A stretch of DNA of 64,000 nucleotides from Oculina patagonica (lineage: Eukaryota): positions 19,964,001-20,028,000 of the forward strand of contig NC_135770.1 in NCBI RefSeq assembly GCF_052425735.1, read 5' to 3'. The notes below the pieces were generated by a model. It searched no databases, was not told the origin of the DNA, and saw only the letters and a program-made list of their open reading frames with translations. Positions within the stretch are counted from its first letter, which is position 1. Every line of letters begins with the position of its first letter. Position numbers and translations under genes: made by a program. Below, one piece after another: positions 16,116 through 63,739 of the stretch.

Positions 16116-18489
16116 TTACTCTCGAAATGGTGAGTCTTTAGACAGCAGGAGAGACCATCCTTGAAATGGCTGAACAGACACTGAATCTGAAGTGTCGTCA
16201 GTATGGATGGTAAAACCCGGCATTCCTGCCACAAGTTTGGCAGTGTCAGTCACACCATCCATGTGATTGATGTCGACACCAGCTGGTTTTCTGAGCTGGA
16301 GTGGTAAACTGACCAGGCCGCTCGTCATCTGGCTGATATCCATGTCATCTTTCCTGCCCTCCAAAAACTCGGTTATCCATCCCCTGTAACGATACTTGCC
16401 CTCAATGACCATCCCCGAGCCGTAAGCATTCTCATAAGTGATAACATGACTCCACCATTTCCGATCTGGCTTGCCCTTGTAAGTAGCCAACAATTTGCTG
16501 AACACTAGCTCCACAACATTCCACCACTCTGATGTCAAGCCAAGATTGTACTGTATCGGTTCAAGCAGTGTTCGCAGTACCTTCAGTTTGGATTTTAGTT
16601 TTTTCCAGTCATCTTCAGTGCCTAGCATCTCAATTGCAGGGATTCCGCAACCTCCAAGCATGCTGTAAATAAAATACTCTTGAACTGAATACATCAATGT
16701 GATCTGCGAAACGATCTTCTGTACTGCAGTTGTGGTGCTGAAGTCCGCCGTCATTCCATCCACGAACTCAGGTACTTTGACATTCTCTTGTATTCCCTTC
16801 CCTATTTGATCAAAGAACCAACTGTAGTCAACGGTATAGATGCTTCGATCAGGTACTTCCACTTCAATGGTTTTCTATAATAACAATATTAATATTATTA
16901 ATAAAATGATGATGATGATGGTGTGTCTTAAGTCCAACTTTTTATTATGCAAATTCCGCAAAAACATGTTTTATTGTTTTGTCAACCAACATGGCCGCCT
17001 TGTCACGTGGTTGCAAACCAAGAATTGAATTTTTTCCCGGTTCTCGGTTTCTCGTTCTCCGTTACTCTGTTTAGTAACACCCCTCATGTGTATTTAAAAG
17101 CTTACCTTTCCCTCGTGATCAACAAACATCTTGCGAACGGACTCTTCCTTCGCGTTTCTGTCGATAGCCCCGACGATTCCAATCAATGAGTATCAATAAT
17201 CAATAAAATCAATAGTTATCAATAATAATCAATTGATTGATATTGATTGATATTGATAATCAATTAAAATCAAAGCCGCAATGTTGAGTGATTTTCGATT
17301 TTCATTGATTTTCATTGATTGCCATTGATTGTCATTGATTTCTATTGAAAACTTAAATCGGTTTTATTTTTATTTTTTTTTTTAATAAATCTCACGGACG
17401 AGGACAGAGACCCAATTTTATTTCTGATATCCGATTACTGAAGTAAAGTACCACAGAAACAACAGTAATAATTAACAGTAACTTTTTATTATATTCATTT
17501 CTTTGCTGTATCATCCTATTGACATGTATTGACAACTATTTCAAACATGCATTTCCTGCAATTTAGTTGGTGTGTTCGTTTATATGACATTAACAATAGC
17601 GTTACTCGAACTAGACTTCAATATTGTTTCGTTTTCTCAATTCTAGATAGATCAGTGCAATCAAACAGAAACAATTTAACAATTTAATAAAATTTAACAA
17701 TTTAATAAAATCGACTACACAAGAAATAGAAATCTTCACAGACATGGCGCCGATGATGTGTTTCAGTGTGTTTGCAAACGCGCCGGGAAACGCGTTAAAT
17801 CAAGCAAATGCCTTTGTAGCCGGGTTTTTACTGTTGCACAATCAGCTATTGATTATCAATTAAAATCAATGAAAATCAATGAAATTAAGACGGCTCGGTG
17901 AGTGATTTTCGATTTTTATTGATTATGTAAATTAATCAATATCAATCAATTGATTACTATTGATTAATATTGATTATATTGATTGAAATCAATGATTGAT
18001 TTTCATTGATTGAAATCGTCGGGCGATAGCGCAAGCCACTCGTCTGATAACACTGAACCACCAGTCATCTGGGGAGGTTCGTAATTTCCAGTGGTTGTTG
18101 TAGGCTGTCAGAACGGCAGAAAACAATCCGCAATTTCCAAGCGAATAAATGCTCTCCGTTGATCCCAAGGCGGCAATCATATCTTGTGGAAGAGAGTAAT
18201 TTACCCCCGTATTTGGATGGTAGACAGCTCTTATTTCTCGTTCCGAGGATTGACCCAGCGAGTAATCCTTGATCAACTGTTTTGCTTGGCTGGGTACAAG
18301 TTTGCTGTCTTCGACTTTGACTGGAACCAGATTGATGGCAAGAAGGACAGAATTGACACTCACTCCATCGACCGTGGTGTGTTGACTAATAACAGGAGCC
18401 TTAGCTTTGTTCTTAGCCATCGTGCAAACGGTAAACAAGCAACAGAATTTTCCAACAGTCAGAACAGCCAGAAATCACACTTTGAGCAT
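16116..18489 (-). pseudogene. DUF4419-like copy 1 (two exons, MITE-disrupted, stop in signal peptide)
   Basis: Exon 2 16116-16874; GT-AG phase-0 intron 16875-17105; exon 1 split by a MITE at 17169-18023, and the frame is restored if the MITE and one TSD are removed. Leader reads MLKV*FLAVLTVGKFCCLFTVCTMAKN. Family motifs AYNNHWKLRTSPDDWW, ADFSTTT, CGIP and YRGWITEF are present. Confidence 0.8.
17169..18023. mobile_element. MITE inserted in the copy 1 coding exon
   Basis: TIR cccgacgatt(c/t)caatcaatga, 7-bp TSD cgatagc, subterminal attgat/atcaat arrays. Confidence 0.9.
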
Positions 18490-20519: not shown

Positions 20520-21713
20520 TTAATACTTGCAAAAAGGAGAGTCTTTAGACAGCAGAAGAGACCAGCCTTGGAATGGCTGTACAGACACTGAATCTGAAGT
20601 GTCGTCAGTATCAACGGTAAATCCCAGCATTCCTGCTACAAGTGTGCCACTGTCCTTCACACAGGAGACAGGGTCTTCAATGGTCAGCGGAACAGTAACA
20701 ACACCAGTTGACATGTCGTCAATTTCCAACAGGTCCTTCTTTCCCTCCAAAAACTCGGTAATCCAGCCCCTGTAAGATTTTTGCCCGCCTGACCCAAAAC
20801 TTTCCTGGTAGCTGATAATATGACTCCACCACTCCCTATCTGGTCTCCCGTGGTAAGTAGCCAATAACTCGCTGAAGACTTTCTCCACCAGATCCCACCA
20901 TTCCGATTCCAAACCAAGATCTTTCTCTATCGGTTCAAGCAGTGTTCGCAGTATCTTCAGTTTGGATTTTAACTTGCTCCAGTCGTCTTCAGTGCCTAAC
21001 ATCTCCACTGCAGGGATTCCACAGTCAAGTATCATTTTAAAATGAAAATACTCTTGAACTGAAGACATCAATGTGATCTGCGAAACGATTTTCTGCACTG
21101 CAGTTGTGGTGCTGAAATCTGCCGCCATTCCATCCACGAACTCAGGTACTTTGACATTCTCTTGTATTCCCTTCGCTATTTGATCAAAGAACCAGCTGTA
21201 GTCGACGGTGTAGATGCCCTGGTTAGTTACTTTCACCTCGATGGTTTTCTTTTCTTCGTGATCAACAAACATCTTGCGAACGGTCTCTTTCTTCGCATTT
21301 TTGTCGATAGCGGAGGCGACTCGTTTGATAACACAGAACCACCAGTCATCTGGCGAGGTTCGTAGTTTCCAGTGGTTGTTGTAGGCTGTCAGAACGGCGG
21401 AAAACAGTCCGCAATTTCCAAGTGAATAAACGTTCTCCGTTGATCCCACTGCGGCAATTACTCGATTAGGAGAATCGATTTTACCTAGCATCGAACCTAG
21501 CAGCTTCCTCTCAATCGCTGAGGCTTCGTCATTTGTGTTTTGAGAATCTTGCGCGTACTCGTTGAACAATTCTTTGGCTTGGCTTTGTACAAGCCTGCTG
21601 TCTACAAACTTAGAAGGAACGAGGTTTTCGGCGAGAACAACACAAGTGATTTTCAATCCATCGGCGGTCGTGCGCTGACTGATAAGAGGCGGCTTCGTTT
21701 CGTAGTTACCCAT
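20520..21713 (-). CDS. DUF4419-like protein copy 2, intronless, ~397 aa (starts MGNYETK)
   Basis: Uninterrupted ORF with first in-frame ATG at 21713. Motifs AYNNHWKLRTSPDDWW, FSTTT, CGIP and GWITEF match my recollection of DUF4419 (PF14388); needs an HMM check. Confidence 0.85.
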   Translation of the reverse strand: MGNYETKPPLISQRTTADGLKITCVVLAENLVPSKFVDSRLVQSQAKELFNEYAQDSQNTNDEASAIERKLLGSMLGKIDSPNRVIAAVGSTENVYSLGNCGLFSAVLTAYNNHWKLRTSPDDWWFCVIKRVASAIDKNAKKETVRKMFVDHEEKKTIEVKVTNQGIYTVDYSWFFDQIAKGIQENVKVPEFVDGMAADFSTTTAVQKIVSQITLMSSVQEYFHFKMILDCGIPAVEMLGTEDDWSKLKSKLKILRTLLEPIEKDLGLESEWWDLVEKVFSELLATYHGRPDREWWSHIISYQESFGSGGQKSYRGWITEFLEGKKDLLEIDDMSTGVVTVPLTIEDPVSCVKDSGTLVAGMLGFTVDTDDTSDSVSVQPFQGWSLLLSKDSPFCKY

Positions 21714-22705: not shown

Positions 22706-23561
22706 TGCGGGGGCAATAATAAAAAAACGCTTTATTTAACCACAATCTGTATTAAAGCAAATATATGCTCGAGGGGTCGTGTGTACGTGTGACTTACTAC
22801 TTACCTAAGAAAAATTAATATTACACTGTAATAAAATGAAATGAACGATATTATATTTTAACAAGAAGCTCTCAAAGCTTAAAACTGACGTGACCAGCCT
22901 ATGGGAAAATTGTGGGGAGACAAAAAAATGCACCCCCCCCCCCCTCCGCCATGCCCATTATCCGCGTCATTTGTGTTGCGACTTACAAACAAAAGGTAAG
23001 AAGACACCTTGTGTGACATTTCATGGTTGACGAGTTCCATCTGCAATTAATTATTTTTCTTATATTCTAATGCTGGCCAAATTTTATCCCCACGATCCTG
23101 ATCCGTGAAGCCAAAAAGTCTATTAAACCAGCATCCAGTGCTGTATCGAATTGCTGCTTAAACATTGAATAACTCGATCTAAAAATGGAAAATTGAAGCA
23201 GATAATTAAATCAATTTTTTGCTGAACTTCTTCCTGGTACACGCGGAAGAATAGTTCGGAATTGATCTTGCGTGATGACATGTCTTTCAGTGACAGCTTA
23301 GAGGACCAACAACTTAACTCAGCCAATGAGTATGTTTTATTGCCAGCCCAATATTTCGAATTATTAAAGCATAGACGGCAACTCATTTGCAGATTATTCG
23401 TTTCTAATAATCAATGAGCCAGCAATTTCGACATAAGCCTACCGCCTTTAGCTGCTATTAAAAGCTGCTGTTCCTACTTAAAACTAAAAAGAACTAAAAA
23501 GTGGAACTCAGTGAATGTAGGCTGTGGCATTGCTTGGGGGTTACTCTCCCTATAGAAGCTA

Positions 23562-24487: not shown

Positions 24488-25636
24488 CTACTTGAGAAAT
24501 GGTGAGTCTTTAGACAGCAGAAGAGACCATCCTTGGAATGGTTGTACAGACACTGAATCTGAAGCATCGTCAGTGTGGACAGTGAAACCCAGCATTCCTG
24601 CGACAAGCTTGGCATCATCCTTCACACAAGAGACGGGATCTTCCATGATGAGTGGAACAGTGACAAGGCCAGTCGTCATGTTATAGATTTCCGTGGGACT
24701 TTTCTCTCCTTCTAGGAACTCGGTAATCCAGCCCCTATACCCTGAGGTTCCACCTGACTCCCAAGCACGTTTGTAGCTCATAATATGACTCCACCATTTC
24801 CTATCTGGTATCCCCTGAAAAGTAGCCAGTAACTTGCTGAAGACGTTTCCCACTAGATCCCACTACTCCGATGACAAACCAAGATCTTTCTCTATGGGTT
24901 CAAGCAGTGTTCGCAGTACCTTCAGTTTGGAATTTAATTTGCTCCAGTCCTCCTCAGTGCCTAGCATCTCCAATGCAGGGATTCCGCAGAGAGTCCCCAT
25001 CCTAAAGTCGAAATACTCTTGAACTGCATGCATCAATGTGATCTGCGAAACGATTTTCTGTACTGCAGTTGTGGTGCTGAAATCCGCCGTCATTCCATCC
25101 ACGAACTCAGGTACTTTGACGTTATCTTGTATTCCTGTTGCTATTTGATCAAAGAACCAGCTGTAGTCGACTGTATAGATGCTTGTGTCGGGCACAATCA
25201 CCTCGATGGTTTTCTTTTCTTCGTGATCAACAAACATCTTGCGAACTGACTCTTTCTTCGCGTTTTTTTCGATGGCGCAAGCGACTCGTTTGATAACACA
25301 GAACCACCAGTCATCTGGGGAAGTTCGTAGTTTCCAGTGGTTGTTGTAGGCTGTCAGAACGGCAGAAAACAATCCGCAATCTCGAAGCGAATAAATGTTC
25401 TCAGTTGACCCCAAGGCGGCAGTCATTTCATTAGGACGATCGAATCTGTTCTGTTTTAAGTGTTTTCTTTCTTGCGCGTACTCGTTGAGCAATTCCTTCG
25501 CTTGGCTTTGTACAAGCCTGCTGTCTTCAAACTTAGAAGGAACGAGTTTATTGGCGAGCACGACACAATTGATTTTCAATCCATCGGCCGTCGTTCGCTG
25601 ACTGATAAGAAGCGGCTTGGTTGCGTTGTTGCCCAT
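24488..25636 (-). pseudogene. DUF4419-like copy 3, single nonsense codon
   Basis: TGG>TAG at 24863-24865 (SE*WDLV versus SEWWNLV). The rest is in frame and very close to copy 4. Confidence 0.85.
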
Positions 25637-30923: not shown

Positions 30924-33734
30924 TTACAACAACAACAATTTATTGAGGTATTTCCATAAAAATACATGGCATTACCTACTTACACTTGAGAAATTACAAG
31001 TAGTATCAGAAATAAAACAAAAATGCGATTTTATCATTTGGAAAATAAAGTTTCATGTCTAAGAGACATAGCTTGAAAAACAAAAGCAGCAGTTGATCGA
31101 CAAACAGCAGGATCAATGCTGTTACAAAGAAATAAAGATTTTGCATTAATATCAAACTCGTTAAAAATACTATATTTGGCGGTTATTTCATTAAAGAACT
31201 TTAAACGTATGTTTTCGTATAGCTTGCATGAAAATAAGAAATGCATTTCGTTTTCAATTTCATCCGAATGGCAGAAAGAACAGATTCTCAAATTAATAGG
31301 AGTCTTGGGTATTGTGTGTCTACCAGTTTCGATACGTAATTTGTGATTCCCAAGTCGAAATTTGCTAATGGCAGTTCTGTGGTGAGGATTGTTGATTGCG
31401 TCCAGAAAACTAGATTTTTTGGTATCTTTTTTAAATGAATGATAAAATTGTAATTTTCTGTTTGTGCTAATTAGTTTTAGTTGATGAGCTATTAACGCTT
31501 TGCTAATGTTTTGCTTAATGTAAGAAGTAAAGAGTTTTCCGTTGTTTTCATTTAATATTAAAGAGCTCGAGTTGTATTTATTGCATAACTGATTCATTTT
31601 AAGCATTAGACCTGTCTGGGTTTTATCAGCCATCTCCTTAGAAAGCTGTAGACATTGCTTAGCGATGTTATTTTCTGGTAAGCTCTGAAGATGAATCCAA
31701 AATTTTACTATGGAGGTTTCGATGGCTAATTTTAGAGGAAGCCTTCCAAGTTCATTTCTGGTTGCAACATTTGGGCATTGTTTATTCACTCCTAAGAATT
31801 GTTTGCAAAAATATATGTGTGTTTTTTCGATGTCATCTTTCTCCCAATTGTTGAAATCATCTTTATCGTAGATACCCCAAACTTCTGAGCCGTACAGTAA
31901 AATAGGGAGAAAGAGAGAATCAAAGAGTTTATTTGTGACACTAAGGGACAATTTTGAAAAATCCAAGTAACGGCGAGTAGCAAAGATGGATCTTCTTGTT
32001 TTATCTTTTAAGTTTGATTTACAGTCTCTAAAGCTTCCGTTTGCAGAAAAATTTATACCAAGATAAGTGTAATTGTTGACAATTTCAATTTTGTCATTGT
32101 TTATATGAAAATAATGCTTGTCGAGTAAAGATTTCCTGCATTTCTTTTGGAAGATGACAACTTTCGTTTTCTTTGGATTAACGGACAGCAGCCAATCGTT
32201 ACAGTATTTTTCAAGAATGGAAAGTGCCTTCTGCAGACCTTTAGCTGAGTGAGAGATTAATACTAAGTCGTCTGCGTAAAGTAAACAGTTTAAATTGGAG
32301 CCGTTAGGTAGAGCGATAGGATCTGTGTCTTCTCGGTCTAGTAAAAAAGGGATTTCATTTAAGTATAAATTAAATAACATGGGCGACAGAATGCAGCCTT
32401 GACGTACACCTTTCTGATAATCGAAAAATTCAGTCCTTTGGTCACCATACTTAACAGAACATTTAGTTTTTGAGTAAAGATTTTTAATCAAATCATAGAA
32501 ATTTCCACCAATCTTATAATGTAAAAGTTTGTAGAATAGTCCATCATGCCAAACCGAATCAAAAGCTTTCTTGAAGTCAATAAAACAAGTGTACAGTTTG
32601 CCTCTTGCTGTATGACTGACATATTTATCCACTAATGTTCTTAGGGTAAAAATATGATCTGATGTGCGATGATTAGGTAAAAAACCGATTTGAGCTTGAT
32701 GTAATATGTTTTGTTGAAGTACATGATTTTTCAACCTGGCATTGAGGACCGAGGTAAAAAGTTTTCCGAGACAGCTACTAATGCATATTCCCCTGTAGTT
32801 AGAAGGGTCGTTTTTATTTCCCGATTTATAAATTGGTGTAATTAATCCTTCGCACCAAGTGCTAGGAAAGAAACCGCTTTTCAGAATAAGATTAAATAAT
32901 TTGCAAAGGGCAGTGATAAAATATTGCATTCCAGCTTTTAGCATTTCATTGCGAATCTTGTCAGGACCGGGGACTTTCTTTGATCGAAGTAATTTTGTCA
33001 TAGATTCTATTTCAGCAGGTGTAATAATTGTATCTAAATAATTGTGGGTGGTTTTTGTTTCTTCTAAGCTGAAGAGTTTCTCCCCTAAAATATTATTGCG
33101 AGGTAATAATGATGAGGTATTTATGGACGAATGTAAATCTTGAAAATGGTGATACAACTTGTCAACAGGAATATCATGATTGTTGGAAGGGGGGTTGTGG
33201 CCTTCCTTCATTAATTTGAGGTTATCCCAAAATTTATGACTGTCTTTGTGATTAACAAGGTCTTCAATTTGGGAATTGAGATGTTTCGATTTTTTGTACT
33301 TAATCAATTTCTTGAATGTTTTGCGAGTCGTATGGTAATCATGTCTAAGTTTTGCATCGTAAGGATTTCTATGTTTTTGGTTGGAAAGCATACTGAGATT
33401 CTTTCGCAGAAGTGCACAGTCTTTATCAAACCATAAGTTATGTTTCTTTGTTTTCTTTTTAGGACAAGCGATTTTGAGAGATCGTAAACATGTATCAGTT
33501 ATGATTTTAGTGAATTGTTCTGTTGCCAAATCAATTCCTTTACAATCAAAGGTAAAGTTAGTCTTCTCAAAGTTCGATAGACGTAAAAGAACGTCATCTT
33601 GTTTTAAGGCATTGCGAAAATTTTCAAAGGATGATTGATCCCAGATGAACTGTTTTGGATTATTGAAAGTTTTTACATTTGTATGACTGGTAGTTTTGGA
33701 AGAGGCTGGTGTTTGGAGATTTAACCAGCAGATG
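30924..33734 (-). mobile_element. 5'-truncated non-LTR retrotransposon (probably RTE-X-like clade)
   Basis: Open ORF2 from the end of the endonuclease through RT; 3' aataaa followed by a (TTG)n tail at ~30924-30943. No clear TSD. Confidence 0.88.
31034..33529 (-). CDS. LINE ORF2 reverse transcriptase with C-terminal CCHC zinc knuckle (5'-truncated; frame open to ~33730)
   Basis: PGPDKI, NYRGI, FIDFKKAFDSV, GVRQGCILSP, LLYADD, YLG and HKLRIETGRH...CSFC...HFLFSC motifs with no stops over 831 aa. Confidence 0.9.
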   Translation of the reverse strand: MATEQFTKIITDTCLRSLKIACPKKKTKKHNLWFDKDCALLRKNLSMLSNQKHRNPYDAKLRHDYHTTRKTFKKLIKYKKSKHLNSQIEDLVNHKDSHKFWDNLKLMKEGHNPPSNNHDIPVDKLYHHFQDLHSSINTSSLLPRNNILGEKLFSLEETKTTHNYLDTIITPAEIESMTKLLRSKKVPGPDKIRNEMLKAGMQYFITALCKLFNLILKSGFFPSTWCEGLITPIYKSGNKNDPSNYRGICISSCLGKLFTSVLNARLKNHVLQQNILHQAQIGFLPNHRTSDHIFTLRTLVDKYVSHTARGKLYTCFIDFKKAFDSVWHDGLFYKLLHYKIGGNFYDLIKNLYSKTKCSVKYGDQRTEFFDYQKGVRQGCILSPMLFNLYLNEIPFLLDREDTDPIALPNGSNLNCLLYADDLVLISHSAKGLQKALSILEKYCNDWLLSVNPKKTKVVIFQKKCRKSLLDKHYFHINNDKIEIVNNYTYLGINFSANGSFRDCKSNLKDKTRRSIFATRRYLDFSKLSLSVTNKLFDSLFLPILLYGSEVWGIYDKDDFNNWEKDDIEKTHIYFCKQFLGVNKQCPNVATRNELGRLPLKLAIETSIVKFWIHLQSLPENNIAKQCLQLSKEMADKTQTGLMLKMNQLCNKYNSSSLILNENNGKLFTSYIKQNISKALIAHQLKLISTNRKLQFYHSFKKDTKKSSFLDAINNPHHRTAISKFRLGNHKLRIETGRHTIPKTPINLRICSFCHSDEIENEMHFLFSCKLYENIRLKFFNEITAKYSIFNEFDINAKSLFLCNSIDPAVCRSTAAFVFQAMSLRHETLFSK

Positions 33735-34240: not shown

Positions 34241-35803
34241 ATGGAGTCTTCGCAATTTGTTGCCGTTTATTTTTGTTATATTTCAATCTTGCTTTCTGTC
34301 AAGCCTTGCTTGTCGAACTACACGGGTGCAGTTTACGAGCATGTTACATTCTTTGTCGTTGAAAACAAGACTGAGTTAACTCGCCCAGCAGCCTTGGAAA
34401 TTATGAAAAAGAACCTCGATGTTTACCAAACACAGGCAGTCCTGGCAAAATCCAAGGGTGCCGACATCATAGTCTTTCCAGAGGATGGTTTGTATGGCTT
34501 TGACTTTACACGCGAACAAATCTTTCCTTTTCTTGAAATTATCCCGGATCCATCAAAGCTGGAAAAAAGTTGGATTCCCTGCACAGATCCCGATCGTTTC
34601 GACAACACTGAAGTGTTAGGGGAGCTGAGCTGCATTGCTCAAAACTCTTCCATTGCGGTGGTTGCTAACATGGGCGATGTGCAGTATTGTGACAAGTCGG
34701 ATCCACACTGCCCCGAAGATGGCAGATACCAGTTTAACACTGATGTGGTCTTCGATACAGACGGCACATTACTAGCAAAGTACCACAAGCAACACTTGTT
34801 TCACGAAGATCAGTTCAACACTCCTCAGAAAGTAGAAATCGTGATTTTTAAGACGTCGTTTGGTGTGACGTTTGGAGTGTTCACTTGTTTTGACATGCTT
34901 TTCTATGATCCTGCTATTGTGCTTGTCGAGAAGTTTGGTGTTCGCAACATTGTGTTCCCAACTGCATGGATGGATGGATTTCCCATCCTGGCCTCAGTAG
35001 AGTATCAACAGGCATGGTCAATATTGACATGTGCCAATCTTCTAGCAGCCAATCAGCATGTACCCCGGTTGGATATTGTTGGGAGTGGGATTTACTCTTG
35101 CGGAGAAGCATTATCGTATGTCTATGACTTGAAGACCGATGAAGGGCATCTTTTGGTGGCAAGTTTGCCTAACTTAGAGATGCACCCAAAACTACCTCTG
35201 GAGCATGACACCTGTCAATCAAACAATGTGCAATCTAATTTGCCACTGTATGATATGAAGCATGAATCCTGTCAATCAAAGAATGTGCCATTCAACTTGC
35301 CAGCGAATGACATCAAACAGGCAAGATCAATCTTTCATTCGAAGCTGCTTCATGACATCTACACGTTCGTCAAAATTGATGGTGCTGAGGGCAATGCTTC
35401 AGTTTGTGCTAATGAGTTTTGCTGCTATGCAAGTTACACCTTGCCAAGTCAGCAACCTTTGGATAATGAACTTTTTGCATTAGGAGCTTTTAACGGACAC
35501 CATGACTCATACAGCTACATCATCCAGGCTTGTGTTTTGATAAAATGCAACAGCATGTTGAAAGATTCCTGTGGGACGGCGACGCTAACTTCATCAACAA
35601 TATTCAATTCATTCCAGCTAATGGGGAACTTTTCATCAAAGGCTTATGTATTTCCTGAGGTTCTGGCATCCAATGTGGAGCTAATCGCAGCGAAGGAAAT
35701 CTCAATCTCTGGGAATGTTAATATGAGTGTAAACTCATTTGAAAAACCTTTGCTGTCAGCTGTTCTTTTTGGCCGGATTTATGAGCTTGATCATGTTGAA
35801 TAG
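34241..35803 (+). CDS. VNN: Vanin/pantetheinase-biotinidase family amidohydrolase (nitrilase fold), secreted, single coding exon, 520 aa
   Basis: Hydrophobic signal peptide, then AVYEH, IIVFPEDG (Glu), YHKQHLF (Lys), FTCFDMLF (Cys) and FPTAW, followed by a Cys-rich base domain ending LFGRIYE. No hydrophobic GPI tail. Confidence 0.93.
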   Translation: MESSQFVAVYFCYISILLSVKPCLSNYTGAVYEHVTFFVVENKTELTRPAALEIMKKNLDVYQTQAVLAKSKGADIIVFPEDGLYGFDFTREQIFPFLEIIPDPSKLEKSWIPCTDPDRFDNTEVLGELSCIAQNSSIAVVANMGDVQYCDKSDPHCPEDGRYQFNTDVVFDTDGTLLAKYHKQHLFHEDQFNTPQKVEIVIFKTSFGVTFGVFTCFDMLFYDPAIVLVEKFGVRNIVFPTAWMDGFPILASVEYQQAWSILTCANLLAANQHVPRLDIVGSGIYSCGEALSYVYDLKTDEGHLLVASLPNLEMHPKLPLEHDTCQSNNVQSNLPLYDMKHESCQSKNVPFNLPANDIKQARSIFHSKLLHDIYTFVKIDGAEGNASVCANEFCCYASYTLPSQQPLDNELFALGAFNGHHDSYSYIIQACVLIKCNSMLKDSCGTATLTSSTIFNSFQLMGNFSSKAYVFPEVLASNVELIAAKEISISGNVNMSVNSFEKPLLSAVLFGRIYELDHVE

Positions 35804-46279: not shown

Positions 46280-47428
46280 TTACTTGCAAAATGGGGAGTC
46301 TTTAGACAGCAGAAGAGACCAGCCTTGGAATGGCTGTACAGACACTGAATCTGAAGTGTCGTCAGTGTGGACAGTGAAACCCAGCATTCCTGCGACAAGC
46401 TTGGCATCATCCTTTATCCTAGACACGCGATCTTCAATGATGAGTGGAACAGTGACAAGACCAGTCGTCATGTTATAGATTTCCGTGGGACTTTTCTCTC
46501 CTTCCAGGAACTCGGTAATCCAGCCCCTGTACCCTGAGGTTCCACCTGACTCCCAAGCACGTTTATAGCTCATAATATGACTCCACCATTTTCTATCTGG
46601 TATCCCCTGGTAAGTAGCCAGTAACTTGCTGAAGACGTTTTCCACTAGATTCCACCACTCCGACGTCAAACCAAGATCATTCTCTATGGGTTCAAGCAGT
46701 GTTCGCAGTACCTTCAGTTTGGAATTTAATTTGCTCCAGTCGTCCTCAGTGCCTAGCATCTCCACTGCAGGGATTCCACAGAGAGTCCCCATCCTAAAGT
46801 CGAAATACTCTTGAACTGCATGCATCAATGTGATCTGCGAAACGATTTTCTGTACTGCAGTTGTGGTGCTGAAATCCGCCGTCATTCCATCCACGAACTC
46901 AGGTACTTTGACGTTATCTTGTATTCCTGTTGCTATTTGATCAAAGAACCAGCTGTAGTCGACTGTGTAGATGCTTGTGTTGGGCACAATCACCTCGATG
47001 GTTTTCTTTTCTTCGTGATCAACAAACATCTTGCGAACTGACTCTTTCTTCGCGTTTTTTTCGATGGCGCAAGCGACTCGTTTGATAACACTGAACCACC
47101 AGTCATCTGGCGAGGTTCGTAGTTTCCAGTGGTTGTTGTAGGCTGTCAGAACGGCAGAAAACAATCCGCAATCTCGAAGCGAATAAATGTTCTCAGTTGA
47201 CCCCAAGGCGGCTATCATTTCATTAGGACGATCGAATCTGCTCTGTTTTATGTTTTCTCTTTCTTGCGCGTACTCGTTGAGCAATTCCTTCGCTTGGCTT
47301 TGTACAAGCTTGCTGTCTTCAAACTTAGAAGGGACGAGTTTTTTGGCGAGCACGACACAAGTGATTTTCAATCCATCGGCCGTCATGCGCTGACTGATAA
47401 GAGGCGGCTTGGTTTCGTTGTTGCCCAT
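46280..47428 (-). CDS. DUF4419-like protein copy 4, intronless, ~382 aa (starts MGNNETK)
   Basis: Uninterrupted ORF with all family motifs; ATG at 47428. Confidence 0.88.
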   Translation of the reverse strand: MGNNETKPPLISQRMTADGLKITCVVLAKKLVPSKFEDSKLVQSQAKELLNEYAQERENIKQSRFDRPNEMIAALGSTENIYSLRDCGLFSAVLTAYNNHWKLRTSPDDWWFSVIKRVACAIEKNAKKESVRKMFVDHEEKKTIEVIVPNTSIYTVDYSWFFDQIATGIQDNVKVPEFVDGMTADFSTTTAVQKIVSQITLMHAVQEYFDFRMGTLCGIPAVEMLGTEDDWSKLNSKLKVLRTLLEPIENDLGLTSEWWNLVENVFSKLLATYQGIPDRKWWSHIMSYKRAWESGGTSGYRGWITEFLEGEKSPTEIYNMTTGLVTVPLIIEDRVSRIKDDAKLVAGMLGFTVHTDDTSDSVSVQPFQGWSLLLSKDSPFCK

Positions 47429-47429
47429 C

Positions 47430-50400
47430 GTGTGAGGAGCAAGAAAACAAAACACACCACGGAAGCTACCGGGGACAGATAATCAAGAAAGTCAGCTCAG
47501 TTCGAGGTCGTCGAGAGTATTTAAGGCATTCACTGCTGCTTAAAACGCTTTGAGGACTTTTTAGACTTTTTAGACGTCCAAACACGGATGTCTTATTGGT
47601 CATGTTACAGTATCTAATAATAAATATTACGACATAAAATTTAACCACGTATAAGGTCGGGACGTGACTAGTCGACAGGTTTCTGCGACAAGTCGTGTGT
47701 ACTGCTTCAAGCCGCTGTCACAAGGCGCTTGACACACAGCGAATTTTATTTGGAATAGTGGGAATATGAACTAAGTCTACACACGCTGCGTCAACCTGCT
47801 TTCGCTCATTTTGTCGCTGCTACCAGTCGCACGAATTCAAACTGGGTTGAATTCCTGCGACTGATCGCAGCGACAAAATTCTAATTCAAGAGAGTAGCAT
47901 TTAATTTCAGATCGAATGAAAGAAGTGTTTTACCGTTGCGAGTATTTTTCAGTTTGCTGGTTCGTCTTAATTTTCTATGGGAACACTTATAGCAACACTA
48001 AACTTTACAGGAGAAAGTTGTCATGATCTGATGAAAGACCTGACAGTGTTTCCCGTCGCAGCGCGATTATACGGCACGTGATTCATTAATTATCTTTATG
48101 TCGCAGACTTTTGCCACGCTATCACGTTTGCTAAACAAAACTTGAAATCCTTAGATGTAGTTGGTGATCTGTTCGATATAGTTAAGTACTGTAATGTCTA
48201 AAGTCAAAGCCGGCCTTAACATATGTCTTGCTAGAAAACGGTAGTACGTGATGCACTTAATGTGAATATTTGGACCTTTACCACTAAACTGAAACTACTT
48301 CCTGTTAATTAAACGTGGAAGAAATATCTACGACGATCTGTTCGCTAGAGTTAAGTACTGTACTGTCCGAAGTCAAAGTAGGTCTTAGTTTGCGTACGTG
48401 ATGCACTTGAAAGTAAATATTTGGGCCCTCTAGCTCTCTGCATGCTAAACTACTTCCGCGTGTAACAGGAAGTAGTAGCTAGAAACGCTTCGCGTGATGA
48501 AATGTCTTGTTTTGACAGCTTAGAAGACCAATACCTTAACTCAGCCAATGAGAATGTTTTTTGCCGGTCCAATATTTCGAATTAAAGCATAGACGGCAAC
48601 TCACTTGCAAATTATTCGTTTCTAATTATCAATGAGTCAGCAATTTCGACATAAGCCTACCGCTATATATAGAAAGCTGGTGTACCTACTAAAAACTAAA
48701 AACTAAAAAGAACTTAAACTTAGTATGTGTGGGCTGTGGTATTGCTTGAGGGATACTCCCCATGTAGAAGCTATAGCTTTTAGTAATTAGTCTCTGAAAG
48801 TCACGCTGTTGTGTTCGCTACACATAATATTTAGGGACTTCAAGCAACCATGACAGCGACGCTGAGGACAACGTTCATTAAAATATGAATTACTTTACCT
48901 TCGAATCTTGCGCGATAATCTAGATCCATTCTGTTTATCTATAATGGTTAGAGCTATTTCAGAACTGGATATAATGTAAGACAGCGTTCATGTCGAAAAA
49001 GAAAGTTGACCTTTTTTTAGTTTTTGTCATAATTGAAAGCAGCCTCTTGAGTATCGACAGAATTGAAAGCTCTTGTTGCCTTTCTTTTGCCAACTAGTAC
49101 AGCCACTATTTTGTCGTATGCATGTGCTTAATCTACATAAACAAAGCTAGGAATTGTTCAACTGTTTCTTCTGGCAACTTCAGATTACGTTGTTTGTATG
49201 AATAATTCCAGTAAGTCTACGGAGTTTTCTTAAGAAATGGCGAGTCTTTAGACAGCAAAAGAGACCAGCCTTGGAATGGCTGTACAGACACTGAATCTGA
49301 AGTGTCGTCAGTGTGGATAGTAAATCCCAGCATTCCTGCTACAAGCTTGGCTTCATCCTCCACGCAAGAGATGGGATCTTCAATGGTGAGTGGAACAGTG
49401 ACAAGACCAGTTGACATTTGATTGATTTGCATGAGGTCTTTCATTCCCTCGAGGAACTCGGTAATCCAGCCCCTGTACCCTGAGTCATCACCTGACTTGA
49501 AAGCTTCTTTGTAGCTCATAATATGACTCCACCATTTTCTATCAGGTATCCCCTGGTAAGTATCCAGTAACTTGCTAAACACTTTTTCCACTAGATTCCA
49601 CCACTCCAATTCCAAACCAAGATCGTTCTCTATGGGTTCAAGCAGTGTTCGCAGTACCTTCAGTTTGGATTTTAGTTTGCTCCAGTCGTCCTCAGTGCCT
49701 AGCATCTCCACTGCAGGGATTCCGCAGCGAGTCGTCATCTTAAATTTGAAATACTCTTGAACTGAAGACATCAATGTGATCTGCGAAACGATTTTCTGCA
49801 CTGCAGTTGTGGTGCTGAAATCCGCCGTCATTCCATCCACAAACTCAGGTACTTTGACGTTCTCTTGTATTCCCTTCGCTATTTGATCAAAGAACCAGGT
49901 GTAGTCAACGTTATAGATACTTCTCTCAGGTACTACCACATTGATGGTTTTCTATAATAACAATTTTAATATTAATAACATTAATAATTGATGATGATGA
50001 TGATGATATTAAAATAAACAGATACAGCATTAATAAAAATTTAAAAAAAATTACGTAAGATTAACCTTACGAAATTATTAAATTTTAAAAACACAGTGAC
50101 ATTGTACACTAATGAATGACTGTTTCCAAAGGAAACAGCTAATTTTGTTTCCTGAGAATCTAAATGTTTCCCGAGGCGAAAAGGGAAACAAAATTAACTG
50201 CTTTCCTGAGGGATCAGTCATTAAGTGTTTTATTATATAGCTCGTTGGTCAACATTTGTGGGCAACATTGTAATGTTACCCTCTGACGTCAGAGATTTTG
50301 GCGGGAAACAGTTTGGGAAACTTTCAACCTCGTTCCCAGGGCTTTTCCCTGGAAAAGGGAAACTTTTAGCGGAAAACAGCCTTTTTAATTCTACAATGTC

Positions 50401-52715
50401 ATGTGACCTCGAACAAGCCAATAACAGCGCGCCCTGTTGGGAAAAATTCTAAATATTATAACGATAACACTTAATGAAAAGGCTCATATAATTTATAAAT
50501 TAAAAGCTAACCTTTCCCTCGTGATCAACAAACATCTTGCGGACGGACTCTTTCTTCGCGTTTCTGTCGATGGCAGAGGCGACTCGTCTGATAACACAGA
50601 ACCACCAGTCATCTGGTGAGGTTCGTAGTTTCCAGTGGTGGTTGTAGGCTGTCAGAACGGCAGAAAACAATCCGTAATCTCCAAACGAATAAACGTTCTC
50701 CGTTGACCCCAAGGCGGCTATCATTTCATTTGGACGATCGAATCTGCTCTGTTTTATGTTTTCTCTTTCTTGCGCGTACTCGTTGAGCAATTCTTTGGCT
50801 TGGCTTTGTACAAGCCTGCTGTCTTCAAACTTCGAAGGAACGAGTTTTTTGGCGAGCACGACACAATTGATTTTCAATCCATCGGCCGTCGTTCGCTGAC
50901 TGACATAAGGCGGCTTCGTTTCGTTGTTGCCCATCGTGTGAGGAACAAGAAAACAAAACACACCACGGAAGCTACCGGGGACAGATAATGAAGAAAGTCA
51001 GCTTAGTTCGAGGTCTTCCAGAGTCCAGGGTCCAGAGTATTAAAAAGGTTCACTGCTGCTCAAAACGCTTTAAGGACTTTTTAGACGTCCAAACACGGAC
51101 GTCTTATTGTCTTGTTACAGTGTCTAATAATAAATATTACGACATAAATTTTAACCACGTATTAGGTCGGGACGTGACTAGTCGACAGGTTTCTGCGACA
51201 AGCCGCTGTGACAAGGCGCTTGACACACAGCGAATTTTATTTGGAATAGTGGGAATATGAACTAGTTTTCTAATTAACTATGGCAAAAATACATAAGTCT
51301 GCACACGCTACGTCAACCTGCTTTCGCTCATTTTGGCGCTGCTACCAGTCGCACGATCGCGAATTCAAACTGGGTTGAATTCCTGCGACTGATCGCAGCG
51401 ACAAAATTCTAATTCAAGATAGCAGATTATTGTTATGTCATTTAATTTCAAATCGAATAAAAGAAGCGGCCATTGCGAGTATTTTTCAGTTTGCTGGTTC
51501 GTCTTTATTTTCTATGGGAACACTTATACCCACACAAAACTTTACAGGAGAAAGTTGTCATAAACTGATGAAAGACCTGACAGTGTTTTCCGTCGCAGCG
51601 TGATTATACCGAACGTGATTCATTAATTATCTTATGTCGCTATCACGTTTGCTACCCAAAACTTGATTTCCTTAGATATAGTACGGTGATCTGTTTGCTA
51701 TAGTTAAGAACTGAAATGTCTAAAGTCAAAGCCGGCCTTAACATATGTTTTGCTAAAAAACGGTAATACGTGATGCACTTGATGTGAATATTTGGACCTT
51801 TACCTCTAAACTGAAACTACTTCCTGTTAAACGCGGAAGAAATATCTGCGACGATCTGTTCGCTATAGTTAAGTACTGTATTGTCTAAAGTCAAAGCCGG
51901 CCTTAACATATGTTTTGCTAGCGAACAGTAGTACGTGATGCACTTGAAAGTAAATATTTGGGCCCTCTAGCTCTCTGCTGAACTTCTTCCTGTTACACGC
52001 GGAAGTAATAGCTTGAATCTCCTTGGGTGATGAAATATCTTGTTTCGACAGATTAGAGGACCAATAATTTAATTCAGCCAATTAGAATGTTTTATTGCCA
52101 GGCGGCAACTGATTTGCAGATTATTCGTTTCTAATTATCAATGAGTGAGCAATTTCGACATAAGCCTACCGCTATATATAGAAAGCTGGTGTACCTACTA
52201 AAAACTAAAAAGAACTTAAACTCAGTGTATGTGGGCTGTGGTATTACTTGAGGGATACTCTTCTTATAGAAGCTATAATATGGTAGTAATATGGCAAATA
52301 AAGTCACGTTATCGTGTTCGCTACACATAATATTTAGAGACTTCAAGCAACCAGGACAGCAACGCTGAGGACAACTTCGATTAAAACTGAGTTATTTTAC
52401 CTACGAATCTTTCTCGATAATCTAGATCCATTCTGTTTATCTATCATTGTCAGAGCTATTTCAAACCTGGATATTATGTAACACAGCGCTCATGTCGAAA
52501 AAAAACTTTTTTGAATTTCGCTTGAATCAATTCGTGATAATTGAAAGCAGCCTCTTGAGTATCGGCAGAATAGTGAAAGCTTTTGTTGCCTTTATTCTGC
52601 CAACTAGTACAGCCACTATTTTGTCGTATGCCGCTTAATTTACATAAACAAAGCTAGGAATTGTTTAACTGTTTCTTCTGGCACCTCAGATTATGTTGTA
52701 TGTATGAATAATTCC
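47430..52715. repeat. Duplicated intergenic spacer (47430-49215 versus 50935-52715) defining a ~3.5-kb tandem unit
   Basis: Collinear, highly similar non-coding sequence including an internal ~170-bp dimer. Partial copies at ~23250-24480 and ~60860-62350. Confidence 0.9.
49217..50934 (-). CDS. DUF4419-like protein copy 5, two exons, ~385 aa (starts MGNNETK)
   Basis: Exon 1 50512-50934 (...VDHEGK), GT-AG phase-0 intron 49952-50511, exon 2 49217-49951 (KTINVVVPERSIY...). The spliced frame is open. Confidence 0.85.
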
Positions 52716-52718: not shown

Positions 52719-54407
52719 CTACGGAGTTTTCTTGAGAAATGGCGAGTCATTAGACAGCAAAAGAGACCAGCCTTGGAATGGCTGTACAGACACTGAATCT
52801 GAAGTGTCGTCAGTGTGGAGCGTAAAACCCAGCATTCCTGCGACAAGCTTGGCAGTGTCCGTCACACCAGACACGAGGTCTTCAATGGTGAGCGGAACAT
52901 TGACAAGACCAGAAGTCATGTCACGGATTTCCATCAAGTCTTTTTTCCCCTCTAGGAACTCGGTAATCCAGCCCCTGTACCCTGAGGAATCACCTGACGC
53001 GAAACGACGTTTGTAGCTCATAATATGACTCCACCATTCCCTATCTGGTCTCCCCTGGTAAGTAGCCAGTAACTTGCTGAACACTTTCTCCACTAGATTC
53101 CACCACTCTGATGTCAAACCGAGATCATTCTCTATGGGTTCAAGCAGTGTTCGCAGTACCTTCAGTTTGGATTTTAGTTTGCTCCAGTCGTCCTCAGTGC
53201 CTAGCATCTCCACTGCTGGGATTCCGCAGCGAGTCTTCATCTTAAAGTGAAAATACTTTCGAACTGAATACATCAATGTAATCTGGGATACGATTTTCTG
53301 CACTGCAGTTGTGGTACTGAAATCCGCCATCATTCCATCCACGATCGAACTCGGGCACTTTGACGTTCTTTTGTGTTCCCTTCGCTATTTGATGAAAGAA
53401 CCAGCTGTAGTTGACTGTGTAGATACTTTGGCCAGGCACTGCCACGTTGATGGTTTTCTTTCCCTCATGAACAACAAACATCTTGCGAACGGACTCTTTC
53501 TTCGCGTTTTTGTCGATAGCGCAAGCGACTCGTTTGATAACACAAAACCACCAGTCATCTGGGACACCCCTCTGTAACAGACCTGGTGACACCTGATTTT
53601 CCACCAGGTTTTCAACACAAAATCGACCAGGGAAGTCAAAAATCCACCAGGTTGATTACTTACTTTTTGTATGCAATACACTTACACACTTAGCGGGGTA
53701 ATCGTGCACAATTCTGAGCCGCGCGCGCTGTTCAATTCGCTCTGAATCATTCACAAGCTCGTATTACATACAGAAAAGGAAACATATCTGTTTTGTCTCT
53801 TTAGTGACCTGCATGACAGCAGAACAAGCGACAAAAACAATAGAACAAAGTTAACAATTACTTTTTGCTATATTTACATCAAGTTATAGTCAATTATTAA
53901 ATCATGTATATTTTTGCCGCGCGTCGTTTTCTTCTGTTTATAGAGATTTTGGTTGATATTTTCCTGCCCAGGTAAACAAAATTCCTCACCGGGGAGAAAT
54001 AAAATTGACCAGGGATTTTTCAGATAATCACCAGGGAACAGGGAGGACAAATTTCCACCAGGGAGGGCAAAATAACCCACCAGGTCGAGTTTCACCAGGT
54101 CTGTTACAGAGGGGTGTTCTGGGGAAGTTCGTAGTTTCCAGTGGTAGTTGTAGGCTGTCACAACTGCAGAAAACAATCCGCAATTTCCAAGCGAATAGAT
54201 GTTCTCCGTTGATTCCAAGGCGGCAGTCATTTCTGTAGGGAAATAGAACTCGGCTTTGAGCAACTCCTTCGCTTTGCTTTGTACAAGCTCACTATCTTCA
54301 AATTTAGAAGGAAGGAGGCTATTCGCAAGCACGACAGAATTAATTTTCAATCCATTGGCCTTCGTTCGCTGGCTGATTGGACTTGACTTGGTTTCGATAG
54401 CTTCCAT
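52719..54407 (-). pseudogene. DUF4419-like copy 6 (MITE insertion plus 4-bp frameshift)
   Basis: MITE at RTSP^DDWW; a 4-bp insertion near 53343 shifts the frame after VPEF. Confidence 0.88.
53564..54117. mobile_element. Young MITE in copy 6
   Basis: Perfect 26-bp TIR acacccctctgtaacagacctggtga; 6-bp TSD tctggg. Confidence 0.92.
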
Positions 54408-58307: not shown

Positions 58308-60120
58308 TCATATAAGACTTTTAAGCTTACTTACAGGGTCTTTAATGGTGAGTGGGACAGTGACAAGACCAGCTGTCATGTCACGGATTTCCGTGGGGCC
58401 TTTTTCTCCCTCCAGGAACTCAGTAATCCAGCCCCTGTACCCTGAGGTTCCACATGACGCAAAAGGACGTTTGTAGCTCTTAATATGACTCCACCATTCT
58501 CTATCTGGTCTCCCCTGGTAAGTAGCCAGTAACTTGCTGAACACTTTTTCCACTAGATTCCACCACTCCGATTCCAAACCACGATCGTTCTCCAGTGCTC
58601 CAGTCCTCTTCAGTGCCTAGCATCTCCACTGCAGGGATTCTGCAGCGAGTTGTCATCTTAAAGTCGAAATACTCTTGAACTGAATACATCAATGTGATCT
58701 GCGAAACGATTTTCTCCGCTGCAGTTGTGGTGCTGAAATCCGCCGTTATTCCATTCATGAACTCAGGTACTTTGACGTTCTCTTGTATTCCCTTCGCTAT
58801 TTGATCAAAGAACCAGCTGTAGTCGACGGTATAGATGCTTTTGTCATTTTGTCTTTTTGTCTGAATCTCGAATGCCTCATGTTTGCCTCATGTTGTTAAT
58901 TTAATAAACAGACAACAGTCGCAATAACAGCGATTTTTCGGCTTCTCGGTCTCATTTTGATCTCAATTTCGTCGCTAAAATGGATCGTGACTACCTCGCG
59001 AAATTTAAGACGATACGATATGTCATCATTAGCGATAATTTTTATCGCTTATGATGACGGTTTTGCATGGAAAGAATTCTTCTTCAGGTATATGTCTGAA
59101 CGCTTATTAAATAAGCGGACTTAGGATGACTTGGTTTGACTTAGGCTAAGACAGACTTAGTGTGTAGTGTGAACCCAACATATAATAGAGCAGCTCAAAA
59201 CAGGAAGTTAAAAATTTCTTTTTCCACCAAGAACGATCAGAATGCGAAAAATGTGCCAATCACAACAACAACATCAACAACAACCATTTTATTTTGCCAA
59301 ATTAAATAGATAATTAATTACAGCATAACATAAATTAACTAAAATAGGCAAAAAACCAACCCAGAATAGAAACAAACTAAACGAGCTGAGTAGTTACAAA
59401 ATAAATTTAATTGCTTTGACAAGGTTGTACATAAAAGAAGACAAAAGTAAAATAAGACAAGTAATAAGTAATTAAGTACCATGCAACAACGGCGTTTTAG
59501 CGAAATTTTGGGTTAAAAAAGAAATAATCAAGCTACATGGTTAATTATTAACAGTTAATTAACTGACAACTGACAAATGGCCAAAATTTTAACTGACAAC
59601 TGACATTTGTACTCCCCCATCCAGACCCTCTCGATTGTTTTCCTTCCCTCATGATGAACAGACATCTTGCGAACGGCCTTTTTCTTCCTGTTTTTATTGA
59701 TGGCGCCGGTGACTTGATTGATAACACAGAAACACCAGTCATCTGGCGAGGTCCGTAGTTTCCAGTGGTTGTTGTAGGCTGTCAGGACGGCGGACAACAA
59801 TCTGCAATCTGTAGGTGAATAAATAGTCTCCGTTGATCACAGGGCGGCAATGATTTTTTTGGAGTGTCACTTCTCCGTTTTACTCCGCCGCAACAACAAG
59901 CGAAAATTCGTCTACGTTGACTGGCTCTGTCAGACGCCAAACTGTACCAAAATTTCATGAGTTACTCTTTCGCTTGGTTAGCACGAAGCAATGCAAAGGA
60001 TTTGCTATCTTCGAGCTTAGAAGGAACGAGGTCATCGGCGAGTGAAACAGAATTGACTTTTAACCCATCGGCTGTGATAAGCTGACTCATAGCAGGCAAC
60101 ATGGTTGTATTCATGGCCAT
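58308..60120 (-). pseudogene. DUF4419-like copy 7, heavily degraded
   Basis: Insertion at ~58846-59630 after KTIE, an internal deletion near 58590, C-terminal truncation after KDPVS, and frameshifts in the 5' part. Confidence 0.85.
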
Positions 60121-60156
60121 TGTACAAGGAGTAAAATCAATAAACAGTACTAATTA

Positions 60157-62359: not shown

Positions 62360-63739
62360 CTATTTAGTACAGTCAGATTTCGGGCACTTCAGATTACGTT
62401 GTTTGAATATGTCTTCGGGAGCTAGCTTGCGAAATGGCGAGTATTTAGACAGTAGAAGAGACCAGCCATGGAATGGCTGTACAGACACTTCTGGGGAGTC
62501 GTCAGTGTGAATAGTAAAACCCATCATTCCTGCTACAAGTGTGGCATTGTCCTTCACACAAGTACCTTCAATGGTAAGTGGAACATTGACAAGACCAGAA
62601 GTCATGTCACTGATTTCCATCACGTCTTTTTTCCCCTCTAGGAACTCGGTAATCCAGCCCCTGTACCCTGAGGAATCACCTGACGCGAAAGCATCTTTGT
62701 AGCTCATAATATGACTCCACCATTCCCTATCGGGTCTCCCCTGGTAGGTAGCCAGTAACTCGCTGAAGACGTTTTCCACTAGACTCCACCACTCCGATTC
62801 CAAACCAAGATCGTTCTCTATGGGTTCAAGCAGTGTTTGCAGTACATTCAGTTTGGATTTTAACTTGTTCCAGTCCTCCTCAGTGCCTAGCATCTCCACT
62901 GCAGGGATTCCACATAAAGTTAGCTTATAGCCAAAATACTCTTGAACTGAATACATCAATGTGATCTGCGAAACGATTTTCTGCACTGCAGTTGTGGTGC
63001 TGAAATCCGCCGTCATGCCATCCACGAACTCAGGTACTTTGACGTTCTTTTGTATTCCCTTTGCCATTTGATCAAAGAACCAGCTGTAGTTGACGGTGTA
63101 GATGCTTGTGTCGGACACAATCACCTCGATGGTTTTCTTTTCCTCGTGATCAACAAACATGTTGCGAACGGACTCTTTCTTCGCGTTTCTGTCGATGGCG
63201 CTGGCGACTCGTTTGATAACACTGAACCACCAGTCATCGGGGGAAGTTCGTAGTTTCCAGTGGTTGTTGTAGGCTGTCAGAACGGCGGAAAACAATCCGC
63301 AATCAGTTCCACGAATTGAATAAATATTCTCTTCTGATCCCAGGACGGGAATCATTTCATAGGGGATATCGTCGAAATGGGGGGAATCGATGCGAGCATT
63401 AAAATCTCGGCGGGCAATTGCCTTCTGTAGGAACCACTTCGCTTTCCCTGACACAAGATTGGTATCTTCGACTTGAGCTGGGACAAGGTTATTGGCGAGT
63501 AAAACATAAGTGATATTTAAACCATCGGAGGTGGTACGTTGACTAACATTAGGTGGCCTGGTTTCGTTTTTGGGTAACTCATTCGCTTGGCTTCCTACAG
63601 AGTTGTCGACGAGTAAAACAGAAGTAACATTCATACGCTGACTAACAGCAGGGGACTTTGTTTCGTTCTTGGCCATGGTATAAGCAGTAAAATCCTTTAT
63701 CAGCAGACAGATAAGCAGACAAGTCACAAAAGGTGCCAT
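62360..63739 (-). CDS. DUF4419-like protein copy 8, intronless, ~459 aa, predicted secreted
   Basis: Open ORF. The likely start MAPFVTCLLICLLIKDFTA is a signal peptide (an upstream ATG exists at 63787). Duplicated N-terminal segment, seven N-glycosylation sequons and an extended C-terminus. Confidence 0.87.
   Translation of the reverse strand: MAPFVTCLLICLLIKDFTAYTMAKNETKSPAVSQRMNVTSVLLVDNSVGSQANELPKNETRPPNVSQRTTSDGLNITYVLLANNLVPAQVEDTNLVSGKAKWFLQKAIARRDFNARIDSPHFDDIPYEMIPVLGSEENIYSIRGTDCGLFSAVLTAYNNHWKLRTSPDDWWFSVIKRVASAIDRNAKKESVRNMFVDHEEKKTIEVIVSDTSIYTVNYSWFFDQMAKGIQKNVKVPEFVDGMTADFSTTTAVQKIVSQITLMYSVQEYFGYKLTLCGIPAVEMLGTEEDWNKLKSKLNVLQTLLEPIENDLGLESEWWSLVENVFSELLATYQGRPDREWWSHIMSYKDAFASGDSSGYRGWITEFLEGKKDVMEISDMTSGLVNVPLTIEGTCVKDNATLVAGMMGFTIHTDDSPEVSVQPFHGWSLLLSKYSPFRKLAPEDIFKQRNLKCPKSDCTK

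Follow-up and report, generated by a model that had tools for sequence, protein, structure and literature searches.

Class I and class II genes of the major histocompatibility complex (MHC), the fibrinogen-related proteins (FREPs) of molluscs and the Sp185/333 family of sea urchins are recognition families that evolve by birth-and-death and gene conversion. Here we describe a tandem array of genes for DUF4419 proteins in the coral Oculina patagonica, in which hypervariable stretches stand beside a near-invariant Cys-Gly-Ile-Pro (CGIP) motif. The array lies in a window of 64,000 nucleotides, that is, the whole stretch of DNA that was analysed (NCBI RefSeq assembly GCF_052425735.1, contig NC_135770.1, positions 19,964,001 to 20,028,000 of the forward strand).

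The DUF4419 family is very large (5102 representative clusters at E<=0.001) and is spread over animals, fungi, protists, bacteria and large DNA viruses. Hardly any literature treats it, and no structure has been solved. Pfam (PF14388) records it only as an uncharacterised domain, whose conserved residues and predicted fold are shared by the intact copies in the window. Among insect and giant viruses, the domain is found in ORF1 of Leptopilina boulardi filamentous virus (LbFV; PMC5381508, Table 2) and in homologues from an entomopoxvirus, Catovirus and Tupanvirus (PMC5381508, PMC7125106). The viral proteins have the same Pfam domain as the coral ones according to these two papers, but they are single genes, likened here by description only, and no array or variable loops are reported for them. 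A full-text literature search for DUF4419, PF14388 and IPR025533 returned only passing mentions, on viral or amoebal homologues, and nothing on what the Cys does, on hypervariable loops or on DUF4419 genes in tandem arrays.

Eight minus-strand copies of one gene were found in the window between positions 16116 and 63787 by tblastn, with the longest intact open reading frame (ORF) as the query. Copies B, D, E and H are intact, and the other four (A, C, F and G) are disabled. The reading we lean towards is that of a birth-and-death DUF4419 tandem array, whose variable patches diverge at a near neutral rate in exposed segments beside a conserved site, either by specialisation of the paralogues or by loosened constraint. 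The copies are as follows, with residues numbered throughout as in copy D; MITE stands for miniature inverted-repeat transposable element.

Copy A, 16116..18420, minus strand: exon 2 at 16116-16874, intron at 16875-17105, exon 1 at 17106-17161 and 18024-18420 (from tblastn pieces and the sequence).
Copy B, 20520..21713, minus strand: intact, intronless, 397 aa (ORF; PF14388 E=3e-61).
Copy C, 24488..25636, minus strand: TAG at codon 258 (24863-24865), where the tblastn alignment reads SE*W.
Copy D, 46280..47428, minus strand: intact, intronless, 382 aa (ORF; PF14388 E=3e-59), identical to database protein P0001.
Sites in copy D: patch 1 (residues 145-151) at 46976-46996; patch 2 (210-216) at 46781-46801; Cys217 codon at 46778-46780; patch 3 (289-299) at 46532-46564.
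Copy E, 49217..50934, minus strand: intact, exons at 50512-50934 and 49217-49951, spliced translation open for 385 aa.
Copy F, 52719..54407, minus strand: pseudogene with a MITE (53558-54117) within RTSP/DDWW and a 4-bp frameshift near 53343, without the K/KTI intron.
Copy G, 58320..60147, minus strand: degraded pseudogene with stops, frameshifts, a gap of about 780 bp and CGIP changed to CRIP (tblastn pieces).
Copy H, 62360..63676, minus strand: intact, intronless, 438 aa (ORF; PF14388 E=3e-59).

With insert and intron left out, copy A has an open frame of 404 codons, and this copy is probably disabled by the transposon (MITE) in exon 1. The tblastn pieces of copy F fall in different frames. 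Copies C and D are 93% identical; copy H has a partly duplicated N-terminus and, in the alignment, a one-residue deletion ahead of CGIP. ORFs are sparse in the window, and its GC content is about 40%. The array extends about 20 kb past the window, and more copies are located at 18.53 and 19.50 Mb of the same chromosome and on another chromosome.

The block containing copies E and F (49128-54848) is repeated about 17.4 kb downstream, just outside the window (G000:C13, approximately 20,030,000-20,036,500; L012, L015 and L017). Over 3.6 kb, the repeat matches the F part with 99.97-100% identity, MITE and frameshift included. The repeat of the E part, termed E', is 96-97% identical, and its coding sequence diverges past residue 250. 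The repeat is either a very recent segmental duplication or in part an assembly duplication.

The original prediction, made from this sequence alone, described long blocks that hardly change and three short patches that change in almost every copy, one after KTI, one before CGIP and one before YRGW. All quoted motif strings are present in the ORF translations and tblastn alignments. Before CGIP, before YRGW and after KTI, respectively, copy A has IYSMLGG, ENAYGSGMVIEGKYR and EVEVPDR; copy B has HFKMILD, QESFGSGGQKS and EVKVTNQ; copies C and D have DFRMGTL, KRAWESGGTSG and EVIVPNT; copy E has KFKMTTR, KEAFKSGDDSG and NVVVPER; and copy F has HFKMKTR, KRRFASGDSSG and NVAVPGQ. The strings of copy H are GYKLT-L and KDAFASGDSSG. 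The invariant blocks ADFSTTTAVQKIVSQITLM and YRGWITEFLEG are identical among the window copies.

The variation was ranked in an alignment of 13 copies from this genome, seven in the window and six outside; ten of them are intact, and A, C and F were included with their lesions skipped or masked. Variable columns are clustered beyond chance (runs test, p<=0.0004). Two of the three patches stand out as claimed: patch 2, before CGIP, and patch 3, before YRGW, each rank first among approximately 300 domain segments of the same length. Patch 1, after KTI, is less extreme (rank 14-40). Residues 310-320 and 330-342 and the N-terminal 72 residues, which had not been listed, are as variable as the listed patches. 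Three of the copies originally compared (A, C and F) are disabled.

The same positions also vary in distant homologues. In 49 of these, positions 145, 147, 149-151, 210, 212-216, 289-291 and 296-299 carry more than 3 bits of entropy; variable positions alternate with buried hydrophobic residues that are conserved, and there are no indels before the Cys. The patches adjoin the family-invariant motifs F-x-[YF]-x-x-x-x-x-C-G-I-P and G-S-G-x-x-x-x-Y-x-G-W. A hypervariable stretch of fixed length directly precedes the conserved Cys in the Oculina array, in the arrays of other corals and in distant homologues. The hypervariable stretches beside the near-invariant CGIP are a real and general pattern, which the coral arrays amplify.

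Membership of the family is clear from the profile. The intact copies match PF14388 with E of about 1e-60, and B, D and H score 208, 201.3 and 201.2 bits against a gathering score of 25 bits. The coral proteins align in one stretch only to profile positions 2-214 of 303; their C-terminal third is therefore divergent. Family-wide conserved residues are His100, Asp109, Trp111, Arg132, Phe186, Cys217-Gly-Ile, Asp230-Trp231, Trp282 and Gly302-Trp303. Among distant homologues, the Cys of CGIP (Cys217) is retained in 92 of 99, Gly218 in 96 of 97, Ile or Leu at 219 in all, His100 in 88 of 91, and Asp230 and Trp231 each in 95 of 96. Cys217, His100, Asp109 and Asp230 each exceed 90% conservation, and six of the 99 homologues have Ser, Tyr, Asn or Ala in place of the Cys. 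Cys217, Gly218, His100, Asp230 and Trp231 are all present in copies A-F and H. The array proteins lack a signal peptide and probably reside inside the cell. In longer homologues, the only domain fusions are repeated DUF4419 and one C1_2 domain, which is uninformative, and no consistent partners were seen around the genes of two distant homologues from metagenome contigs.

Copies B, C, D and E, as well as the outside copies L009 and L010, start with MGN(N/Y)(E/A)TK or MGTSNSK, which match the N-myristoylation consensus. As a family feature this signal was rejected, because copies A, F and H and many relatives start with MA or ME and the copies of other corals carry Lys after the Gly.

Alignments of 60 and 95 sequences gave two AlphaFold2 models with the same topology (predicted local distance difference test, pLDDT, 81; predicted template modelling score, pTM, 0.8). 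Residues 140-220, which contain patch 1, the invariant DFSTTT block, patch 2 and the Cys, are unreliable in both (pLDDT 28-65), and the larger, better-covering alignment of the second run did not improve them. Patch 3 is a predicted loop between strands in a confident region (pLDDT 76-92 in both models). The top matches among AFDB fold clusters are DUF4419 proteins (E 9e-27 to 1e-13, template modelling score 0.5-0.63), and ESM Atlas gave only DUF4419 clusters. No fold match was found in the PDB by Foldseek (best E 0.09) or, against 48,161 PDB representatives, by VIA-align (best Z 5.0), nor in AFDB Swiss-Prot (best E 0.08). Searches with phmmer and profiles against PDB sequences, NCBIfam and the language-model atlas minus PF14388 found nothing outside DUF4419.

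Copy E contains a phase-0 GT..AG intron (49952-50511) between K and KTI. The strings NVVVPER of copy E and EVEVPDR of copy A are reached only across this intron, which the other copies lack. In public run X1, a contig connects 49951 directly with 50512 (ends CT..AC), exactly at the predicted splice sites, and a loose end in run X2 agrees; contigs from both runs also cover the D and E exons. Since the X1 contig spans the predicted junction and the exons are covered, at least the E type (E or the near-identical E' outside the window) is transcribed and spliced, and at least D and E are transcribed. The K/KTI intron was seen only in A (16875-17105), E and E'. The A and E introns have homologous ends, and their interiors differ by large indels. 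The intron is absent from all other copies examined, both of this genome and of other corals. It therefore appears to have been gained in this lineage or passed on by gene conversion.

Gene conversion is pervasive in the array. Trees from four gene segments are discordant, and a permutation test on shared runs of polymorphic sites detected significant mosaic tracts in several pairs; recombination must therefore be allowed for in selection tests. Copies E and E' form a mosaic, identical to about residue 250 and then divergent, and a tract shared by F and H (291-313) carries patch 3. The tree of residues 88-205 has one quarter to one half the length of the others and groups L007, located 1.5 Mb away, with C and D. 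This segment (46814-47167 in copy D) is the most conserved third of the gene, and its synonymous divergence (dS) is only 0.1-0.3 compared with 0.6-1.7 elsewhere, which suggests either gene conversion over long distances or constraint on the nucleotide sequence itself.

The original prediction attributed the variation to diversifying selection, and this part was not supported. The whole-gene pairwise ratio of nonsynonymous (dN) to synonymous divergence, omega, is 0.23-0.48. In sliding windows by the Nei-Gojobori method (NG86), dN is elevated in the patches, but so is dS (to 1-1.7), whereas dS in the invariant blocks is 0.1-0.3. No sliding window is robustly above 1: the few that exceed it do so because dS is close to zero or because they lie in the poorly aligned N-terminus. 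Goldman-Yang codon likelihoods were then calculated with segment-specific trees, branch lengths fixed from model M0 and coarse grids. For the 13 copies, the comparison of M1a and M2a gave a likelihood ratio test (LRT) statistic of 30.1 (p=3e-7) with 4.8% of sites at omega 3.2 and top sites 58, 147, 151, 203, 210, 214, 297 and 314; the ten intact genes alone gave 20.0. A replicate set from tandem DUF4419 arrays in other coral assemblies (nine distinct single-exon genes on seven contigs) gave 19.2 (p=7e-5), and its top sites are the three residues that precede CGIP and the one that precedes GYRGW.

However, the assumption of a constant synonymous rate fails badly, as letting this rate vary improves the fit by 86 in twice the log-likelihood difference (2dlnL). 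On a grid of synonymous (alpha) and nonsynonymous (beta) rates, allowing beta>alpha gains a 2dlnL of only 2.3 for the 13 copies, 0.5 for the intact copies and 1.8 for the other corals. In 60 data sets simulated on the same trees under the fitted model without positive selection, the constant-alpha statistic has a median of 26 and reaches the observed value of 32 in 38% of replicates. The M2a result was thus rejected as evidence of selection, because synonymous-rate heterogeneity would produce it; this heterogeneity is most simply explained by gene conversion. A region-wise fit of alpha and beta gives omega of 1.0, 0.59 and 0.45 for the three patches (0.76 jointly) and 0.20-0.30 for the conserved blocks, so that the patches are never significantly above 1, and the recombination-aware site analysis with segment trees lends the diversifying claim no support that is robust to synonymous-rate variation.

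The arrays of other corals show variation clustered in the same segments. Omega is 0.10-0.30 in their blocks and 0.45-1.8 in their patches, none significantly above 1; in patch 2 it is 1.0, with alpha and beta both two to three times the local average. The only value nominally above 1 belongs to the two-residue core of patch 3, which has zero synonymous change (LRT for beta>alpha 5.6, p=0.018) and was chosen post hoc. Amino-acid differences between six recent pairs are enriched 2.5-3.6 fold in the patches. One pair, L033a and L033b, is 95% identical, yet seven of the nine nucleotides in the three codons before CGIP differ; either a short conversion tract or intense selection could produce such a cluster.

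The core is held by purifying selection (omega 0.1-0.3) and partly homogenised by gene conversion between copies, and the patches change at about the neutral rate (omega 0.45-1.0). The patches are older than the sequence around them, as synonymous divergence is elevated there as well, and short conversion tracts move them between copies. Under the reading we lean towards, and judging from conservation, Cys217 together with His100, Asp109, Arg132 and Asp230 may form a family-wide functional site, and the adjoining variable residues could make the paralogues differ in the partner or substrate that they prefer. The divergence would reflect loosened constraint or specialisation of paralogues after duplication, not demonstrable recurrent positive selection.

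Several observations weigh against this reading. The putative functional site and its specificity are deduced from conservation. One intact-looking paralogue, L010 (G000:C13:18541274-18542374), has Ser at the position of the CGIP Cys; its other invariant blocks are altered as well (ANFSTTT, GTAD). Four of the eight window copies are dead, and plain decay would fit this too. That runs X1 and X2 consist of RNA is guessed solely from the splice junction, and two runs of raw poly-A RNA reads (X23 and X24) have essentially no coverage of D and E, although this does not bear on expression. With 9-13 sequences, tests that include synonymous-rate variation have little power, and there may be a minority of positively selected sites; candidates are residues 147, 210, 214, 297 and 314 in the Oculina set and, in the other corals, the three residues before CGIP and the one before GYRGW.

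In the model of the original prediction, the patches line a putative substrate or ligand pocket around a catalytic Cys and diverge by positive selection, as happens in arms races between host and pathogen or over recognition. We regard it as possible, although rather unlikely. The M1a and M2a comparisons in all three sets, with about 5% of sites at omega of about 3, speak for it, as do the top sites that fall in the same patches in both data sets, the L033a/L033b cluster, the nominal value for the core of patch 3 and the concentration of differences of recent pairs in the patches; the presence of DUF4419 in insect and giant viruses would fit a conflict setting (PMC5381508, PMC7125106). The signal is, however, removed by synonymous-rate variation and matched by the bootstrap without selection, omega of the Oculina patches does not exceed 1 in the regional fit or robustly in any sliding window, and clustered multi-nucleotide differences are also produced by short conversion tracts.

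Plain decay is less likely still. It supposes that the cluster is redundant and partly dead, that the patches are functionless, drifting surface loops and that their proximity to CGIP is incidental. It would account for the four disabled copies among eight, for patch omega values indistinguishable from 1 and for the low conservation of the same positions family-wide, and the alternation of variable and conserved hydrophobic residues resembles an exposed strand or loop. Yet constraint on the core of the intact copies is strong (omega 0.2), the E type is spliced and the D and E exons are covered, patch 2 has a fixed length without indels across very distant homologues, and the same hot spots recur in independent arrays.

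A comparison within the corals also argues against decay. The L006-type subfamily (e.g. G000:C13:19.50 Mb; P0040 and relatives in many coral species) is like the array type in its domain, its invariant motifs, its lack of introns and its presence in the same genome. It differs in having its own patch 2 (R-F-G-M-K-C-G before CGIP) and a longer patch 3 (NVYASGxYFVPGEYRY), both largely conserved across species. The ratio of patch to background diversity is 3.4 and 1.7 in this type and 4.7 and 3.7 in the array type; at similar background diversity, the single-copy-like L006 type clearly conserves patches 2, 3 and 5 better. Therefore the patches are not free of constraint by nature and are probably not entirely functionless; in the array type this constraint has been relaxed, or the array type has departed from it.

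We speculate further, with considerable doubt, that the arrays could be an intracellular recognition or effector family, in which conversion swaps loop cassettes around a reactive Cys and selection keeps the loops diverse while the scaffold is homogenised. Specificities could then be directed, for example, against DUF4419-carrying viruses or towards symbionts, and loops older than their flanks would be explained even though omega is not above 1.

An artefact of misalignment, pseudogene noise or mis-joined exons is very improbable: three of the sequences originally compared are pseudogenes and two strings span an intron, but invariant anchors flank the patches, patches 1 and 2 are ungapped, the result holds in the ten intact genes and in the single-exon genes of other corals, and the intron junction is confirmed by the spliced contig.

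Besides the array copies, the window contains mobile elements and a neighbouring gene (LINE stands for long interspersed nuclear element).

MITE-like insertion in exon 1 of copy A, 17162..18023, no strand assigned: about 860 bp, with terminal inverted repeats and a GCTATCG target-site duplication on both sides.
LINE-type retrotransposon, 31034..33529, minus strand: reverse-transcriptase ORF of 831 aa (PF00078 E=3e-41), between array members.
Vanin/pantetheinase-like gene, 34241..35803, plus strand: PF00795 and PF19018 (CN_hydrolase and Vanin_C), within the array.
Second LINE-type retrotransposon, 41547..43806, minus strand: broken ORFs (PF00078 E=7e-16 for 41547-42194), between array members.

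The arms of the copy A insertion (17169-17200 and 17992-18023) are 32 nt long and 88% complementary. The insertion in copy F is about 560 bp long, with 29-nt arms (53564-53592 and 54089-54117) that are 97% complementary and a CCCAGA target-site duplication. The MITE-like elements in the coding exons of A and F are thus two different elements. A second vanin-like copy is a fragment (aa 10-171) at 22033-22735 on the plus strand, head-to-head with copy B, which was recovered in four tblastn pieces with 77-88% identity. The vanin/pantetheinase-like gene is a neighbour, and nothing ties it to the DUF4419 system. In the array of another coral, a short ORF with a Death-domain match (L033:16570-16845) is located about 5 kb from two tandem DUF4419 copies.

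For this family, the coral arrays are a natural mutagenesis experiment. They mark the C-G-I-P, DFSTTT, GT..DW and G-W motifs as untouchable, and they reveal short stretches next to invariant motifs that tolerate or exploit change, which makes both concrete biochemical targets. They also carry a warning on method: M1a/M2a tests with p of 1e-5 to 1e-7 in two independent sets are fully accounted for by synonymous-rate heterogeneity, the expected product of gene conversion in tandem arrays.

The comparison with MHC, FREPs and Sp185/333 has two sides. Positive selection is well documented in those families, whereas in the coral array it was tested and not found; the fold of the coral proteins is unrelated, and nothing points to an immune role, to secretion or to a ligand. 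The coral array appears to resemble the three families in its tandem copies, its many pseudogenes, a conserved scaffold that carries short variable segments, mosaic conversion tracts, and variable segments that are seemingly older than their flanks.

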